A DNA stretch of 64,000 nucleotides, taken from Schizochytrium sp. TIO01. Lineage: Eukaryota > Protista > Bigyra: Labyrinthulomycetes. The DNA is taken from positions 4,434,483 through 4,498,482 of the forward strand of contig SMSO01000032.1 of NCBI GenBank assembly GCA_004764695.1, written 5' to 3'. The translations under genes and the position numbers were made by a program. A model generated the notes under the pieces. That model had not been told where the DNA came from, did not search any database, and saw only the letters and a list, made by a program, of their open reading frames with translations. Within the stretch, counting starts at the first letter, position 1. Every line of letters starts with the position of its first letter. This document shows, piece after piece, positions 52,659 through 62,385 of the stretch.

Positions 52659-53830
52659 GCTATGAATAAACTCTTGAATAAAGATTTGAGGACTGGACGG
52701 GGGGTGTGCAGTGTTTATATATCCTGGTGTAGCTCCAGTGTTTGCCTCTTCACAGGTGAAATCTCCGCTGGCATTGTCTAAATGTATACAGATTTCTGAT
52801 CTGGTGGTAGCGCATGAGTGCGTAATTTGTGTATTAGGGGCACCGATTTGCTCACAGGTGCAGTCACTGGGCTGACTGAATGTAGACTGGTCAGCTCCGG
52901 TAGAAGTAGTTGTAGCAGCATTGGTCAGATCGCTAACATGGCTATTCAGGCTTTCGCTCGAAGCAAACTTGGTTTGATACTGCTGATGCGAGCTGTACAG
53001 CCCATCTGATGTCGAACTTTCAGAATTTTTTTTCCATCGCTTGGTTTGATATCTTTAAGAAGGATATATCCCAGTATGTATCTCTACACGCCCTTGACGA
53101 GGACGAGGGGTTTATTTCAATATAGCAAAGGAGTGAGTCCACGTGGACGAATCACAACGTGGGTTCTTGAGTAGAGGACAATACCAACCTCGAATGTAGT
53201 CTGTCTAGGGTAGCAGTCTACACTGATGCACGCAGGTCTAGCCCGTGGACGTCGAGCGCCCTTGAAAAGTGAATACCCCTTCCTCGGCAGGAAAGGTTCT
53301 TTGTCTGATTCGAAGCAGTTGCAGATGTTCCGTGCTCTTCGTTAGTTGGGACTGTTCCGTGACCGTCACGCAATGTCAGCTGGTGTATTTTTAGTTTACG
53401 TCTGTTGCGCAAGAAGCCAAACTCGCGTCTACCTCCTTTCGAACGTCTCAGCTATGCTTGATTCAAAGCTCTAGACGAACGCGCTCTCCCGCGAGCGAGA
53501 GGTTACTAGCTCGCTCTGGCTTGCTCTGATTAGCTATTTGATGCCTTATTTTCTTCTCTTTCCTCTCTTTCTCTCTTTCTCTCTTTGTCCCTTTCTCTTT
53601 CTTTCTTTCTATGACCCCTATAATTAGAACTAGGTAGTGAAGTAGGTAGTGGGTATTGGAACAGGGGTGTATTTCTTTCCTTTTTAACCACCTTTTTCGA
53701 CCTATTCTACCCCTAGCGTCAACACTAGAACTGCCGTATATCTACTTTTCTTTAGCTTTGAAGAAATGTCACAGAAGACACCTACCTACTACTACTACCT
53801 TCGTGCATATACTATGGTAGTGCTACCCCT

Positions 53831-53912
53831 ATACATACATACATACATACATACATACATACCTACTACCTACCTACCTACCTACCTACCTACCTACATA
53901 CCTGCCTACCTA
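53831..53912. repeat. Compound (ATAC)n-(CCTA)n microsatellite
   Basis: Directly visible tract. Confidence 0.9.
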
Positions 53913-54206
53913 TCTGTTGACCTGCCGAGATATCTCCTAAACTCAGACAACTCACTGTCTACTAACTCTCTCCACAAGGTGGTCCAACCTTGTGCTTCTA
54001 TCTGGTGTGCTTTAACTTTGAAGACTCTGGCTGAGTAAGAGAGCCTACTCGTAGGAGTGCGTAGCCTCGACTGAAGAGTAGTGACAAAGAGACCACGCCA
54101 TGACGAGGCTCACTCGACTCATCCGCGTCTTTCTATGTAAACTATAACTGCTATAACTGAGTAGGTAGGTAGGTGATAGGATAGGCACCTGACTACTACA
54201 TACATG

Positions 54207-54245
54207 ACAAACAAAACAAACAAACAAACAAACAAACAAACAAAC
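54207..54245. repeat. (CAAA)n microsatellite
   Basis: Directly visible tract. Confidence 0.9.
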
Positions 54246-54845
54246 TTTCTTTGGAAGAGAGTTTGGTACTTGCGCTGCCTACAATGTTTTCTGAATAGAA
54301 TCATTGAGCGATTATGTTCTTATGTTCTGTTGAGTGAGTTTTTCACCCAAGTTAGAAGATTTCAACTTGTCAACTTGTTGAACTCAGCGCCTCTGACTCT
54401 GCTAGTGAAAGTGGAATGAATAGGGAGAATAGAAGCATCCTTCTACAGGCTAGAAAGGTAGTACCCACCTACTTAGTACGGTAGGACAACAATACAATAA
54501 CAGTTTCCAAAGAATATCACGGTTGACTCATTTTTGTGCATAAGACACCCTAGGTAGGTAGGTAACGAACCCTAGCTTTCCGTTGCTGCCTTTGCTATTG
54601 CCCTAGCTATTTTGAAGTTGGAGCTACTCGAACTACTATGCTCAATTCTGCGTACGTATGCGTTTCTTGCAATGCGGGTATTGATGAGGGTCGAGCACGT
54701 AACTCAGTATTTCTCTGACAAGTTTATATGTCTATAACCATTTTACCGAAAGCCTTCGTCTACTCGGATTCTCGCTCGACGATACGTTCATCATCTACGC
54801 GAAAGCTTATTTACTTGTTCTCTCTGATTGGCTGAAGACATTTAT

Positions 54846-54878
54846 TCGCATCGCATTGCATCGCATCGCATCGCATCG
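54846..54878. repeat. (TCGCA)n pentanucleotide microsatellite
   Basis: tcgcatcgcattgcatcgcatcgcatcgcatcg. Confidence 0.85.
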
Positions 54879-55404
54879 AGTAGGTAGGCAGTAGTAGTAG
54901 TGGTGGCTAACTAGTAGTGGTGGCTAACTAGGTAGGTAGATGGGCGGAAACAAAGAACCGAAAGAAGAAGGAGGCGAGTCCAAGCAACTTGAGAATGAAT
55001 GCATCGGCAAAAGGCACCACAACCGGAGACAGAAGGATGTGCATGAATGACTGAGTGGGTGGTAGAGCGAGCGAGCGAGGACTTGAGGGCTGCCCTAACA
55101 ATGAGAGGTACCTGGGAAACCATAAGTTCATAACATCCATCACATTCCTCACAGTCATTAACTGAAGAAGCGAAGAGCTTGAAGTGAAGAATAAGAGACC
55201 TAGGAAATTATTAAATAACAACTTGAAGCAAAACAAACACTGATCTATCTTGTTATGACCTGAGGTTGACCGTGGTCTCTCTCTGTCAGCGTCGTTTCTC
55301 TCTCTAGAGATGGCATTGAGTAAGAGCTTGAAGAAAGGAGGAACTTCTTTATATATATATATATACCTATGATATTGTTTGTGTATTGCGGTCGAGGGAG
55401 AATT

Positions 55405-55417
55405 AGAAAGAAAGAAA

Positions 55418-55454
<37 letters not shown>

Positions 55455-55457
55455 AAA
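55405..55457. repeat. (GAAA)n microsatellite
   Basis: Directly visible tract. Confidence 0.9.
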
Positions 55458-55671
55458 CTGTTCTTCCCCCCTGTACTAACTGAATAAGGGTAGAACCTAC
55501 CTAGCTAGGTTCTTCTAGCTAGTACCTAGGCATCAAACAGAAAAAACAGAACTTGAGGAAAATTCCTTGGAAAGGAAAGAGAGACAGACAGTGCAGACTA
55601 TTTGCACACACACAGTATCTAACTTGAACAGAACTAGCTATGCCTCATTCACAAGTCAAAGGCAATGAGCT

Positions 55672-55937
55672 AAAATCTTTCAAGTTGGGTTAAAAATCAA
55701 GCCAAAACAAATATGTCTTTCTTTTCCTGTCTCTAGTGACTGCTTCTGGAGATCGAAGACCTTCAAGTTGAACAAGCTTTTTGGCACTCTCGCCCGTCAG
55801 AGGCTGCCCCTTTCAATCTTTTCTCACTTGAATAAAGACTAATGCAAGCGTATACCCACCATACGAGATTTCATCTCATGCGGAAGTGATAGCAATCCTC
55901 TGACTTGGGTAAAAACCCAAGTCAAAACAATCACTCA
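55672..55937 (-). repeat. Two minus-strand copies of the dispersed ~45-bp hairpin element
   Basis: Copies at 55672-55712 and 55894-55937. The second contains a perfect 10-bp inverted repeat TGACTTGGGT-AAAA-ACCCAAGTCA (55901-55924). Confidence 0.75.
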
Positions 55938-57341
55938 CAATCATGGAAATAATAGAAACCATATGAGCGGCAAACATATCTACCAAGGATCAAATTGTAG
56001 ATAGCTAACTACGATGTAGTGCTTAAACTTCAAGATACCAAGTTAAGATCATGCTGAGGCAATGAGAGATCCAGGTGTGTGAAAGAAAGAGATCTTCGAA
56101 GCTGTGTACATACCCTATCAAAGGCTGACGAAAGGATTAAGGAACAGAAACAAAGGTGTGAGTGAAAGGAGAAAAGATCATGAAGAACGCAAAAAATCAT
56201 CAAATCAGAGCAGTGAAAAGAAAGCTCTCTCAGCTTCGAGACTTTTAGATTTTTAAGTCACCAAGTGTTACTCGCCTTCAAGAAATTCCGCAGAAGGAGA
56301 CTTGTCTTCTTTAAGTTCTAATTTAAACATATTAATTCAAAAAATAGCAGACAAATTTCGGCTGCAATTAACTTTGCAAGTTGGTGACTTATGCAATATA
56401 TCTCAGTGGAATTATTCGCGCAATAAATAGTTGATGTAAGAGGCATAGAAAGTCAAGGTTAGATAGTCTGCATCCGCAAACTTAAACTTTCTCTGAAGTA
56501 CGTTCTTCAGCTTGAGCTTAATTTAAGTAAAAGTAGTTATAGAAGTGACCTAAATTCCGGGAAGCTTAAAATGGAATTTTGGCGCAGTCAGGTATATACT
56601 TTATGCATTTCAGTGCATTTTAACTGCATGTCCTTTCTCCTCTCTACTGCTACCGGTGAACAAAGCAAAGACTTTATGAGCCTTTTAATTATACAATAGG
56701 TTGTAGCGAATGCCACAAAGGAATATGCAAATGCTGCGAATCTACAAATTGGTAACGGTAGATAATAAGATTGGGAGTGTTGAATATGTATACGTGGCCG
56801 TCCGACGTTTCATGTATTTTCGTGGGATGTAAAATAATGCGTCGAGGTCCAAGTCTATCGAATAAAACGTTTATAATGGGTTCAATCCGTAAACTTTGTC
56901 TCATGTAAAAAATCTTAGACTAGTGTCATTTGGACGAGATCATTTCGCCGATTGATTCAGATACTTCTTCATTATCTCGGAATCTACGAGTGTTTCATGC
57001 GGAGAATACTCCATTTAAAGTAGTATGTTCAGGTATCTCTGATCCATATTTTTGCAGATAAGTATAATTTAAGCGAGGCGTATGAAACCTCAGAATCTTG
57101 AATATCGAAAATGATCGCGTACTACTACTGACGCTTACTCTGCAAGTTTTCGAAATGGTTATCGAAATGGCCATGGCTACAGTTCCATCCTTGAATCCGA
57201 TATGGATCCTGCTCATTCTCTATCAAAACTCAGCTGCTCGTCCGGCCTCTTAGCTTCAAAAGTGAACCCTGTCAACAATGAACCCATTGAGATAATCTCA
57301 CCTATCCAATGTTAACATGTTTTGACAATTGAAAGCACAGA

Positions 57342-57385
57342 AGTAATCGTTCTGGCTTGAGTCTTTACCGGAGTTAAAAGATTTT
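57342..57385 (+). repeat. Copy of dispersed ~45-bp hairpin element
   Basis: AGTAATCGTTCTGGCTTGAGTCTTTACCGGAGTTAAAAGATTTT. Confidence 0.65.
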
Positions 57386-57634
57386 AACGAGTTAACTATA
57401 ACTAGTGCTATATTGGTATTACTTTAAAAATAAAATTAAAAATGTTTACAGTTAAAGTGTCGGACTAAGCATCAGAAGTTGCGAGCTCTAATCCCAGATT
57501 GCACAGCCACGAAGAGGACAACAGACCTACCCCACCTGTATCCACTTGTTTTGATAGCCGCAACAAGCTCGACAAGCTGATACCTTGTACTGTTCTGCCT
57601 CTCTTCGGGTGAGAAAGGCTTTAAACCAACAGTG

Positions 57635-58484
57635 ATGCCTAGCCAAATGACGCGAGTCCTGATAACACACGCAACAGGTTTTGTGGTACGTTATCAAAGT
57701 GGTCCATGCAACACACGAACTTGCTTCTTAGAACTGTAACTGACATAAATCATAAGCGCGGGACCTATTCTCGCGTTTCTGGTGTCGATTAAACCAGGGT
57801 CACCCGGTAGCAGTTGCACTTCAGCAGAATATCCCAGGTTGCAAACTATTTTGCCAAGATCCTAAATTTGAAGATCTTGAGACTCGAAGCAAGTTTGAGA
57901 GAGGGCTCAGACCATCGGCAATTGAATTTCTACCGTATGCAGACGTTCAGGATATAGCTGCAGCGGTGGACTTTGATGTAGATGTGTTGATTCACAATAC
58001 CGCATACCCAGCTATCAAGCGAAAATTTGCAGAGATACCAACCCAAGAGTTTACACAGACTCTTGAAGCGTTAACAGTATTTCCTTTTGAGCTAACGAGA
58101 GAACTTCTCCCTGCCATGCGCAAAAGGAAAGCAGGAAAAATCATTTTCGTTACTAGCGCTACAGTATTTCGTGGACTTCCTAACTACGCCTCCTACGTAA
58201 TTGCGCGCGGGGCGACCAACACAATGGCACTCACCCTTGCTCAAGAGGTTGGATCCGACAATATATGTGTGAATGCTGTCTGCCCAAATTTTGTGGAGAG
58301 CGAAACTTATTTTCCCAAGCATCTTCGTGATGACCCCAATATCTACGCCAAAATGATTAAGCCAATTCCGCTTCAGCGTCTTGCAAAGCCTCACGAGCCT
58401 GCTGAACTCATTGCTTTTCTTGCATCTCCAAAGGCTGATTTTATCACTGGCGCAATTCTTCCATTTGCAGGGGGGTGGGCATGA
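57635..58484 (+). CDS. hheA: Halohydrin (haloalcohol) dehalogenase, HheA-like SDR-fold enzyme; 2 exons (57635-57685, 57798-58484), 245 aa
   Basis: Splicing GTG|GTACGT...AAACCAG|GGT (112-nt phase-0 intron) gives MPSQMTRVLITHATGFVGHP..., which is the T-X4-F-X-G motif. The catalytic S-X12-Y-X3-R motif is SATVFRGLPNYASYVIAR (58155-58208). Also PNFVESETYFP and C-terminal FAGGWA. Confidence 0.88.
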
Positions 58485-58867
58485 TCAACAGATCATTTTA
58501 ATAATGGTTTTTTTGTGCGTTTTTTTAATGTTTGCAAAATTTGTTAACGGCGACCTTTGATGAAGTTGGATTCTCGCAGGCTTAAAAGATGCACTTTTCC
58601 CGACTCAGAAATGAGTAGATGAAAAAAGAGTAAATATCAAATCTATTTTTGACTTTATCTTGGACTGCTCCCCTACTCTGGTCTCAAAGTCGTGAAGTAC
58701 TTTAGTTATAAGAAATTAATTTGTTCGATTAAATAGAAAGTCAATTCTCAAGTAACTTATTAGGTAAGGGCAAATCACTCAATGTATGACTTCATTTTCT
58801 AATCGCATGAAGCTAAATACGGAGCTTTAGTAAAATATAAAGGGTCTTCAGAAACTTGTCAAATATT

Positions 58868-60109
58868 TCACACTTCAAATGGGGTGGACCCGCTCCGCAT
58901 TGCTCCAAATCGAGATCGGGCCGTGCTAAAGCTCAGCTGGGTATGAGAAGAGCCCCCCCGAGATGCGTTGTCAGTCGAGCTGAGCAAATCTGTTGTAGGG
59001 CTTGATTTCGTTTGTTGAATAGATTGCTGAGTTGCTTCATCATTGAGCAAGCACATTTGCAAAGAACATGCAGACAACGAAATTAGGCCGAGTGCTGCAA
59101 TATGCGTGTATGTAACCGGTTTGGGGAATATTAGCACGCTAATCCCAAACGTGATACATTTCCGAATTGTCACAACAATTGTGGCACTTGTCGACCCAAA
59201 CTCTTGAGCAAGTTTGAGAACTTGGCGCTGTCCAAATGAGCTTATCAGTAACACAATTATTTGTTCATAAAGAAGCCGCCTTGGAGCAGCCACAAAGAAA
59301 GCTACACCCTTATGAAAGTCTCCCGATACAGCTACACCAATTAGAAGAAGGCACAACGTGATAATATTTGTGTAAAATATTAGCTCGTCTCGGACCATGA
59401 GTGCAGATATATCTGGACTCTGTCGCCTCATAGGTAGGCTTGAGAACTGTTCTTGAGCACGACGTCGCAATCGGCGGTATAATTGAGCGCAGCACGCCGC
59501 AGCCTTAATCGAACGTCCTTGCAAGACTGACTCTTGTACAATTGCATGAACAGAAATACAGACCATTGAAATAAATGTCATAGTAAAACCCCACATTGAC
59601 CTAATCACAGCTTCTACTGCAACATCTGATGAACGTGTCTCCCCAAGCTGTTCCCTAGTGCCCGCATTTCCGTCTAAAGCAATTTGTTCTGACGGCCCAG
59701 CACTTGTTCCAAGATCTGAAACTAATTGAGACGAATGCGAGGACGACCCCAAATCAGCTTGTGATAAAAGATAAAGACCCGTAACAAGAACTGCGCAATA
59801 AAAGTAAGCCTGATATGAATAACGTCGTCCAACAAGGAGCGCACTTGCGGCCATAACGAAAGCTACTTTAGAAGCCATAAAGAGCTGAACAGTATTGTAA
59901 GCAATCAAGAACGTGGAGTAGTTGTTCAGAACTTGGAATAGAACCACTGCGACACTCGATACAAAATATTCCCACCGGTAGCGAGCAAGGAAGGAATGCA
60001 GGTAATATACAAGTAGTGCCTGTCGCGTTTGAGCCAGGGGTTGGTCGCCTTTCGCGTTGAATAGTGGCATATACTGAGACACTGGTTGCTGTTGCTGCTC
60101 TCCACCCTG

Positions 60110-60140
<31 letters not shown>

Positions 60141-60544
60141 TCCTGCTGCTGCTTCTGCTTCTGATGCTGCTGTTGAGACATTGAAATACTCGCCAATAGC
60201 AGCTGGCTGCTCACATTCAAGAGACCCATAAACCAGCTGACATTTACATTCGCTCGGTTCATTGAGAGACTTATATCCTCTGCAAAGACTGCTTGAAGCA
60301 AGAACAAGAGTATGATCTGTACAGCCTGCACCCAGAACGTCCGTAGTAAAGTCAGGCGAGCAGATTGACGTAGACTGCTGTGTTGATAACCTCCAAGGCT
60401 ATCTACACCATTGACCACAACGCCAGCACTGCTGCCCCCATCTTGAGCGAGCTTGGACTTTGCAAGTTTAGTACTCTTGAACCTCCATACGATCCCATGA
60501 AGAGATTGCAAAACCTCACGCGCACGTGTCCTTATCGCGCGCAT
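58868..60544 (-). CDS. Nucleotide-sugar/PAPS transporter, UAA (SLC35B-like) family, with poly-Gln insertion
   Basis: About 10 TM helices; LNNYSTFLIAYNTVQLFMASKVAFVM, GRRYSYQAY, AIVQE, LAQEFGSTSATIVVTIRKCITFGISVLIFPKP. Poly-Q tract at ~60086-60175. Confidence 0.85.
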
Positions 60545-61116
60545 CCATCCCTCTGACGCGTAGCTGGACGTTTTGGCTTTACTTGATTGCCTCGTTTAGT
60601 TTTCTCCAACTCTATAGAAGTACCTCTGCCACCCCGTGCAGCTTTGCACCCGAGCTTTCGTGCCTCTACGCCTCCACGATGACACTGAGGATGAATGTTT
60701 TGGCGAAGAGGAGGCGTGAGTGAGTCTTTTATTTTTGCTGATACTGTTACCTCATCTAAATCCGATTTTCCGTTCTCACTGTCTCTTTTTGTCCCGCCTT
60801 TTGAAATTTTCAGAATACTTCATTCAGGCTTATCTTACTCCCACTATCTACCTATCTGTCTTTCTCGATGAGCTTGCCAACAATACCTTTCCTCAAATGG
60901 TTTCCTCTAATGTCGGAGGTCATATTCTTGAACTAAATGATCCCCTGGTAAGCAAACAATTTCGCTGATAAGAAACACCTTCTCCATGTTGCCGCTTTTG
61001 GTTTGTGATTTTCTCACGCTATATCTGGTATCTATCTACCTACTACTACCTAGCAATTCGATATTGGAAAGAGATATCATGATCGATGCCTCTTCATTAG
61101 TCAGAGGTAGTCAGTT

Positions 61117-61734: not shown

Positions 61735-62385
61735 ATGTCTTCGAATAACTCCCAGCAACAACAGCAGGAACAACTAGCAAAAGAAAATTCAGGAAACCCT
61801 ATCCTTGTTAGTCACCGACAAAAGAAGAACACCGTGCTCAAATTTATCGAGAATGTACCTTACAAATTTGTTGATGCTGCTGCGGACTTCATTCTAGGAG
61901 AATCTACCTGCGCACTATACCTCAGTATGCGGTATCATCTGCTGCACCCAGACTACCTTTATTCTCGCATCTCAGAGGTGAAACGGGATTTTCGCCTTCG
62001 TGTTGTGCTATGTGTTGTTGACATTCAGAATTGTCAAACTCCTCTTATGCTACTCACCTCGCTCGCATCAGCTAATGATTTTACTGTGATCCTTTGTTGG
62101 AGTCAACAAGAATGTGCTCGCTATCTTGAAACATACAAGATCTATGAACGGAAAGCGCCAAAAGCAATTCAAGAGCGCATTGACGCAGGTTACCTACCCA
62201 AACTCGAGGACGCACTGACCGTTATACGGTCCGTAAACCGCACAGATGTGAAGGTCTTGTCATCAAATTTTGGGCCTCTCCGCAACATTATGTGCTCCTC
62301 TATGGAGGAATTATCTTTATGTCAAGGAATTGGAGACAAGAAGCTGCGTCGATTATATGCCACGTTTAACGACCCTTTCCTGTAA
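61735..62385 (+). CDS. ERCC1: DNA excision repair protein ERCC1/Rad10
   Basis: ILVSHRQKKN, DFILG..CALYLSMRYHLLHPDYL, LRVVLCVVD, WSQQECARYLETYK, HhH region LTVIRSVNRTD...LSLCQGIGDKKLRRL..FNDPF. Confidence 0.96.
   Translation: MSSNNSQQQQQEQLAKENSGNPILVSHRQKKNTVLKFIENVPYKFVDAAADFILGESTCALYLSMRYHLLHPDYLYSRISEVKRDFRLRVVLCVVDIQNCQTPLMLLTSLASANDFTVILCWSQQECARYLETYKIYERKAPKAIQERIDAGYLPKLEDALTVIRSVNRTDVKVLSSNFGPLRNIMCSSMEELSLCQGIGDKKLRRLYATFNDPFL

Follow-up and report, generated by a model that had tools for sequence, protein, structure and literature searches.

The question raised by the locus described here is whether a eukaryotic nucleus harbors and expresses a gene of the halohydrin dehalogenase (HHDH) family and, if so, where this gene came from and what its product may do. 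The window analyzed is a 64,000-nt stretch of Schizochytrium sp. TIO01 (assembly GCA_004764695.1, contig SMSO01000032.1, positions 4,434,483 to 4,498,482 of the forward strand), and the gene in question lies on the plus strand at 57635–58484 of this window, to which all positions below refer. An initial annotation, made from the letters alone, had read it as an intron-containing HheA-type HHDH acquired horizontally. Taken together, transcript, homology, structure, and context analyses make it highly probable that the locus is a single-copy, expressed two-exon thraustochytrid gene for an HHDH of the A/C branch, derived from bacteria and with a mechanism like that of HheC.

Gene structure and expression

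The open reading frame (ORF) list for the locus contained only a 172-aa ORF opening with GTG (57966–58484), in line with the initial annotation, which had noted a truncated short-chain dehydrogenase/reductase (SDR) and proposed that removal of a 112-nt GT-AG intron restores a protein of 245 aa. The coding part of exon 1 (57635–57685) opens with the ATG at 57635 and comprises 17 codons reading MPSQMTRVLITHATGFV, and exon 2 (57798–58484) continues with a frame of 228 codons closed by the TGA stop at 58482–58484, the two exons together encoding 245 aa. The spliceosomal intron between them (57686–57797, 112 nt, GTACGT...CCAG) is in phase 0 and falls between V17 and G18, i.e., within HHDH motif 1, with T11 and F16 of this motif encoded in exon 1 (motif codons 57665–57685) and G18 in exon 2 (57798–57800). 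A candidate branch site, CTGAC, is located 54 nt from the acceptor.

This gene model is identical to a known transcript product. The protein P0001 (MMETSP transcript-derived, Transcript_8086, 245 aa, marked complete), which was retrieved by a protein search with exon 2 and then served as the full-length reference, has exactly the sequence encoded by exons 1 and 2, and its cluster contains an MMETSP0958 entry. In addition, four public runs were aligned to 56500–60600, three of them RNA-like (from three studies) and one DNA (X19). A unitig joining 57685 directly to 57798 was present in all three RNA-like runs at a depth of 18–33, with exactly 112 nt skipped and GT..AG ends (joint 57684->57797, cut +1), and this spliced junction was not found in the DNA run, though the gene and its flanks were evenly covered there. 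Each junction unitig measures 58 letters, of which 28 and 30 fall on either side of the joint, just below the 31-letter rule and as expected from a k=31 graph. The transcript identity and the RNA junction thus bear out both the intron and the restored protein, and the locus is confirmed as an expressed, spliced two-exon gene.

RNA-like coverage was confined to 57501–58681, with starts at 57501 or 57516 and ends at 58602–58681, delimiting a 5' untranslated region (UTR) at 57501–57634 and a 3' UTR at 58485–58681. No RNA-like coverage was detected at 56500–57458, and no ATG was seen before 57635 on reading the 5' UTR.

In another protein entry, P0122 (EukProt/MMETSP0958, 261 aa), 63 nt of the intron are translated in frame and the other 49 nt (57714–57762) are missing. 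The missing segment is without GT..AG ends, and the entry may represent an unusual isoform or an artefact of assembly; among the Logan unitigs, only the fully spliced and the fully retained forms were present, and not the P0122 form. The header of P0122 gives TAXON_ID 87120, which at NCBI is the fungus Rhizopogon burlinghamii, with 87102 being Aurantiochytrium limacinum, an apparent digit swap, and the thraustochytrid is thus probably A. limacinum or a closely related strain. Moreover, 11 sites in the transcribed stretch (within 56580–59734) differ from the window alike in all three RNA-like runs (e.g., 57759 C>T, 58518 C>T, and 58567 T>A), and the DNA run has the same differences plus more in the untranscribed flank. 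The window assembly therefore represents a strain or haplotype other than the one commonly sequenced.

Motifs, homology, and fold

HHDHs are defined by the motifs T-x4-F/Y-x-G and S-x12-Y-x3-R, the SDR counterparts of which are T-G/A-x3-G/A-x-G and S-x10-14-Y-x3-K (PMC4989007, PMC11976700), and all 19 of the 19 enzymes chosen by an HHDH motif filter were active (PMC4989007). Both motifs were found in the spliced protein at the residues first assigned to them. Motif 1 reads T11-H-A-T-G-F16-V-G18, by which the SDR pattern is broken at H12 and F16, and motif 2 reads S137-x12-Y150-x3-R154, with Arg in place of the SDR catalytic Lys. The triad (58155–58208), consisting of S137 (58155–58157), Y150 (58194–58196), and R154 (58206–58208), aligns with S132/Y145/R149 of HheC and is invariant in an alignment of 27 sequences, as are P180, N181, Y188, F189, and P190 of a putative halide/nucleophile-pocket loop at 58284–58316 (P180-N181-F182-V183...Y188-F189-P190). 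The earlier suggestion that this segment, PNFVESETYFP, resembles the halide loop was upheld, since it aligns with the HheC loop (P175-N176-Y177-L178...F186-Y187-P188) and PNF..TYFP is common to HheA.

A search of 5.8 billion proteins, in which motifs were judged only where a match included the relevant region, divided the matches along the same lines. The matches P0001–P0095 (E 5e-24 or better) carried the HHDH motifs in all cases covering the relevant region, except for P0090, which was without motif 2, and from P0096 on the motif pair was found in none, most of these weaker matches having the S-Y-xxx-K triad and about two-thirds also TGxxxGxG. The published definitions and this split agree with the initial statement that the two motifs set HHDHs apart from SDRs.

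In the PDB, the 12 best sequence matches were all HHDHs, with 6a41 at an E-value of 2.7e-51, HheC at ~1e-28, HheD2 at 1.7e-26, HheA at 6e-26, and HheD8 at 1e-23, and FabG-type reductases ranked below them, so that HHDHs outranked every classical SDR. With 27 sequences as input, the AlphaFold model reached a mean predicted local distance difference test (pLDDT) score of 94, and the best Foldseek matches of this model were 6a41 (template modeling (TM) score of 0.88) and HheC (TM 0.87). Domain databases were less specific: Pfam gave only the generic adh_short and adh_short_C2 (adh_short_C2 at 5e-32), the NCBIfam SDR models were far below their cut-offs (e.g., FabG with 101.6 bits vs 297.75), and NCBIfam contains no HHDH model. 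As such, membership of the 245-aa protein in the HHDH family is supported by motifs, homology, and fold, and a cytosolic location is presumed, as the protein has no N-terminal extension.

Position among known HHDHs

Assignment to the HheA type was found to stand in the broad sense and to fail in the narrow one. HHDH subtypes share less than about 30–33% identity with each other (PMC4989007), and the window protein, with 29% identity to HheA, is no closer to HheA than to HheC (29%). In a careful 57-row tree, proteins with HHDH motifs formed one clade (100/100), which split into a B/D-type clade, marked by P0095 (HheB/HheD2-like), and a 40-row A/C group (92/86) holding HheA, the 6a41-like P0148, HheA7, and the eukaryotic clade, within which the tree does not fix the order of branching; the types covered by this tree were A/C and B/D. 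The phylogeny thus grouped the protein with HHDHs and not with NAD(P)-dependent SDRs, and sequence comparison places it in the A/C branch, where alphaproteobacterial HheA3/5/7-like enzymes and 6a41 are its nearest counterparts.

The closest relatives (45–52% identity) come from marine Alphaproteobacteria, including Sneathiella, Rhodospirillaceae, Paracoccaceae, and many metagenome-assembled genomes. The A-type enzymes of this group (HheA7 of Sneathiella glossodoripedis, L032; HheA3 of Parvibaculum; HheA5 of Tistrella) match at this level over the whole length and have in common with the window protein both motifs, the PNF/YVES-TYFP loop, and an invariant AGGWA end. They differ in being bacterial, intron-less, and GC-rich, with a median GC content at third codon positions (GC3) of 74% vs 38%, and the eukaryotic clade is set off from them by indels of its own as well as by a long stem. 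L032 was equated with HheA7 by organism name and as the only strong homologue in that genome, not by accession; HheA7 is listed from S. glossodoripedis JCM 23214, and HheA3 and HheA5 are given as experimentally verified (Table S1, PMC4989007).

Among solved structures, the best match was 6a41 (dehalogenase/Dehalogenation enzyme, 244 aa), which is presumably bacterial and is also the best solved match of HheA7. The sequence match (2.7e-51) aligns residues 8–245 of the window protein to 8–244 of 6a41, the Foldseek match has E 1.5e-24, TM 0.88, and 41% identity, and the two proteins share nearly the same length, S-x12-Y-x3-R, T-x4-F-x-G, and a C-terminal GGWA. By contrast, 6a41 has SNYVE vs PNFVE here, is without the eukaryote-specific 2-residue insertion near residue 31, and has no intron.

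Among the more distant enzymes, HheC of Agrobacterium radiobacter/tumefaciens AD1 (1pwx) matches in fold (TM 0.87) and at all key positions, T7/F12/G14 corresponding to T11/F16/G18, and P175-N176-Y177-L178 plus F186-Y187 aligning at the sequence level with P180-N181-F182-V183 plus Y188-F189. It differs in its ~29% identity, a C-terminal extension, and a halide loop that is 3 residues longer. The invariant C-terminal W244 may take the role of W249 of HheC, a residue that in the HHDH homotetramer (a pair of dimers) is contributed by the neighboring subunit. HheA of Corynebacterium sp. N-1074 (4z9f) shares both motifs, the PNF..TYFP loop, and a length of 244 aa, and differs in identity (29%) and in its C-terminus (GGYLP vs GGWA). 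The HheA reference used was L128, a copy on a Microbacterium plasmid that is 99% identical to 4z9f; this copy is encoded in a catabolic operon next to an insertion sequence (IS) element, whereas the eukaryotic gene is isolated. On that plasmid (Microbacterium sp. J1-1, NZ_CP089591.1, L128:1488-5480), genes for a DsrE-like protein, an epoxide hydrolase, HheA, and a glycerol kinase are found beside an IS1634 transposase. Classical SDRs such as FabG and DHRS4 have in common with the window protein the Rossmann-type SDR fold, the Ser and Tyr of the triad, and Pfam adh_short_C2, but possess a glycine-rich dinucleotide motif and a catalytic Lys and scored lower than HHDHs. A match on an Ochrobactrum plasmid (H2) was found to be an ordinary SDR (TGAAGGLG) and was used as an outgroup.

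Genomic context and host

The gene is found at 4.49 Mb on its contig (more than 4.4 Mb) in a 64-Mb assembly of 37 contigs, and its neighbors are eukaryotic, namely a UAA-family nucleotide-sugar transporter gene on the minus strand (58868–60544), on the 3' end of which the 3' UTR converges, and an ERCC1/Rad10 gene (61735–62385). The DNA run spans the gene and its flanks as one piece with even depth. In base composition, the HHDH coding sequence (both exons counted together) has a GC content of 46% and a GC3 of 38%, within the 34–54% GC3 of its neighbors, and 80 bacterial homologue genes have a median GC of 61.5% and GC3 of 74%. One copy of the gene is present in the 64-Mb genome, other SDR-type matches being at E 1e-13 or weaker, and at least four epoxide hydrolase genes located elsewhere in the genome could accept an epoxide product. 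No tRNA or Rfam element was found near the gene. Accordingly, it is a nuclear gene of a thraustochytrid, a marine protist, and the initial argument that a spliceosomal intron speaks against contamination is reinforced by removal of this intron in RNA and by the agreement of context and GC3.

Eukaryotic relatives

Five further eukaryote-type homologues were identified. The nearest named orthologue is P0002 (GBG24028.1) of the thraustochytrid Hondaea fermentalgiana with 71% identity, followed by P0003 (CAK9064823.1, filed as Durusdinium trenchii) with 61% and P0004 (JGI) with 60–62%; the other two are P0125, a protein of 304 aa with a low-complexity insert, and P0273. Motif 1 is also present in P0002–P0004 and P0125, and P0273 has S for T. 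P0273 is encoded whole (248 aa) on one contig and split into P0275 and P0274 on another contig of 10.6 kb, where P0275 ends ...YPAVR, P0274 opens with read-through residues and goes on with NPINKVERK, and both together match P0273, which indicates an intron near residue 100, i.e., at another site than in the window gene. The eukaryote-type sequences have indels in common vs the bacterial ones, and all six form one clade (96/87; 99/86 in the 57-row tree).

Their distribution is patchy. Among P0001–P0095, just four full-length proteins (P0001–P0004) are of named eukaryotic source or eukaryote-type sequence, and 27 clusters at 50% identity reached E 1e-30 among 1.84 billion representatives. When the divergent P0125 was used to seed another large protein search, no more eukaryote-type relatives appeared, and a metagenome scan with eukaryote-specific patterns returned only bacterial-type loci with identities of 53% or less. 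A metagenome locus at 61% (L125), taken up as a eukaryotic candidate, proved to be on a GC-rich bacterial contig, and no viral homologue was found in IMG/VR. The search for other eukaryotic homologues that had been proposed at the outset thus revealed a few relatives and no broad eukaryotic spread.

P0003 falls inside the thraustochytrid-type HHDH clade at 61–67%, which could reflect a labyrinthulomycete contaminant contig or protist-to-protist transfer. P0135 (251 aa) is the sister of the eukaryotic clade (85/76) and has VFPF and NFIESETYFPKK as in the eukaryotic sequences, yet ends with DGGCSAL, not AGGWA; another eukaryotic lineage, or one that is unusual in some other way, may be represented here.

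Origin of the gene

Transfer from bacteria is very likely, because of the distribution of the family, the similarity gradient, the best-tree topology, the host-like composition, and the lineage-specific introns. In the best careful trees, the eukaryotic clade lies within the A/C group, apart from the B/D clade (91/87; 92/86). Approximately unbiased (AU) tests of the alternative, in which all bacterial HHDHs form one clade with the eukaryotes outside, gave p 0.44 and p 0.25 (delta lnL 5.8); as these tests do not reject it, nesting in bacteria is favored, not proven. The horizontal acquisition put forward by the initial annotation is therefore retained as the best reading of trees that nest the clade in bacteria, with its topological alternative left unrejected. 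The stem of the eukaryotic clade is long (0.9 in the quick 96-row tree), and this long stem together with the distant SDR outgroup probably weakens the AU test. The donor would have been a bacterium, plausibly a marine alphaproteobacterium, and the transfer is probably older than the Aurantiochytrium/Hondaea split, with drift to host base composition and intron gain presumably following it.

Predicted mechanism

By homology with HheC, the enzyme is expected to need no cofactor. Y150, acting with R154, would deprotonate the hydroxyl of the substrate, which would be positioned by S137, and the resulting oxyanion would then attack the adjacent carbon, expelling the halide and yielding an epoxide. 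A halide pocket would take the place of the NAD(P)H site of SDRs and would be lined by T11, F16, and G18 as well as by the P180-N181-F182-V183/Y188-F189 loop. In the reverse direction, epoxides could be opened by small anions.

The source bacterium of HheC was enriched on epichlorohydrin or haloalcohols (PMC4989007). The neighbors of the alphaproteobacterial homologues include PurK, PurE, COQ9-like, peptide deformylase, and SapC genes. In 10 of the 54 loci analyzed (L009-L088; e.g., L046:2235-2873), the second gene upstream of the HHDH homologue encodes a glutathione S-transferase.

Evaluation of alternative explanations

Several observations weigh against a bacterial-derived HHDH with HheC-like catalysis in this protist. 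At the RNA level, an intron-retaining unitig (57657–57826) reached a depth of 23–36 vs 18–33 for the spliced junction in the three RNA-like runs, i.e., the intron is retained in roughly half of the RNA signal, and translation of the retaining form ends after 17 intron codons, giving a truncated protein. At the protein level, the experimentally verified enzymes HheA and HheC show no more than about 29% identity to the window protein, the catalysis of the eukaryotic members is predicted by homology, and a source organism, paper, or activity record of 6a41 was searched for and not found. Furthermore, no dehalogenation or catabolic gene cluster surrounds the gene in the window, no conserved catabolic partner was found in the 54 alphaproteobacterial homologue loci, which have housekeeping neighbors, for four of the six eukaryote-type sequences the source is unnamed or may be contaminated, and the AU tests given above do not separate the two topologies. 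Retention of the intron may be regulated or may just reflect nuclear pre-mRNA, both being possible.

Against this background, bacterial contamination or an assembly artefact has a negligible probability: the nearest non-eukaryotic relatives are indeed bacterial and the 172-aa ORF is found by prokaryote-style gene callers, yet contig position, eukaryotic neighbors, the spliced intron, host-like composition, and an independent DNA run covering gene and flanks evenly in one piece together rule it out. It is very improbable that the protein is an ordinary NAD(P)(H)-dependent SDR, as which databases label the orthologues; the source names of P0002 and P0003 (DHRS4 or FabG) and the generic Pfam and sub-threshold FabG-like NCBIfam models would fit such a label, but all NCBIfam matches are far under cut-off, the glycine-rich motif is broken at H12 and F16, Lys is replaced by Arg154, and HHDHs top both the sequence and the structure searches. 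Somewhat less remote, though still improbable, is an origin other than from bacteria, with an old eukaryotic lineage as sister to bacterial HHDHs or with bacteria as recipients from eukaryotes. The AU values (p 0.44; p 0.25, delta lnL 5.8) and the long eukaryotic stem (0.9) would allow this, but attraction of the long stem to the distant SDR outgroup is a likely cause of the weak test; moreover, the careful trees put the clade inside the A/C group and away from B/D, identity is 45–52% to the alphaproteobacterial enzymes vs ~29% to HheA and HheC, only six eukaryote-type sequences exist in the searches, including that seeded with P0125, many motif-bearing homologues occur in bacterial genomes and unassigned metagenomes, and all entries of the 2016 catalogue are bacterial or metagenomic (PMC4989007). 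Of the alternatives, the one with the greatest weight, albeit unlikely, concerns physiology, namely that the protein has the HHDH fold and motifs but a natural reaction other than the breakdown of man-made halohydrins, which could be directed at halohydrins of unsaturated lipids or algal organohalogens, could open or close epoxides with other anions, or could serve another role. In keeping with this, just two known HHDH genes share an operon with an epoxide hydrolase, and other physiological functions are considered possible (PMC4989007); the alphaproteobacterial homologues reside among housekeeping genes (PurK/PurE, COQ9-like, peptide deformylase, glutathione S-transferase), in contrast to the epoxide hydrolase-HheA-glpK operon of the Microbacterium plasmid, and the window holds no linked catabolic genes. 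However, nothing found favors any particular alternative substrate, dehalogenase activity is listed as experimentally verified for HheA3 and HheA5 from this alphaproteobacterial group, and such a role is compatible with the bacterial-derived HHDH proposed here, differing from it in substrate only.

Novelty and implications

In the literature searched, no paper was found that connects HHDHs to thraustochytrids, protists, or genes of eukaryotes. The view that characterized HHDHs are bacterial, from which the initial annotation had started, accords with the 2016 catalogue, every entry of which is from a bacterium or a metagenome (PMC4989007, Table S1), and with a 2025 paper that calls HHDHs "these bacterial lyases" (PMC11976700). 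The present locus is thus a known enzyme family in a new host domain, which is moderately surprising and not a new kind of system, and domestication of bacterial genes by protists, to which it adds another case, is not unusual. Its interest lies in bringing eukaryotes into the HHDH host range, by way of a clade that is expressed, bears introns, and is labelled DHRS4 or FabG in databases. HHDHs are industrial biocatalysts for statin side chains, chiral epoxides, and oxetanes, and the clade adds sequence-distinct candidates for enzyme screening; moreover, a single-copy gene in a culturable thraustochytrid provides a setting for a knockout test of natural HHDH function.

As a speculation that we regard as doubtful, thraustochytrids and a few marine protists might keep the bacterial-derived HHDH for natural halohydrins. 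HOBr or HOCl made by haloperoxidases would form bromo- or chlorohydrins on polyunsaturated lipids or algal detritus, the HHDH would convert these to epoxides, and the epoxide hydrolases of the cell would then remove the products. If this were true, it would represent the first defined natural role for HHDHs, in a genetically tractable eukaryote, as well as a new intron-bearing enzyme branch for biocatalysis.

Further observations on the flanking DNA

The ~4.7 kb upstream of the gene (52700–57450) contains no ORF of at least 150 aa and has a GC content of 37–44%, and the examined part of it (56500–57458) is without RNA. Downstream, a long poly-Q/poly-QE tract is encoded in the UAA-transporter gene, and a single contig of run X6 (57797–60099) extends into that gene from the HHDH gene, so both transcripts meet or overlap at their 3' ends.

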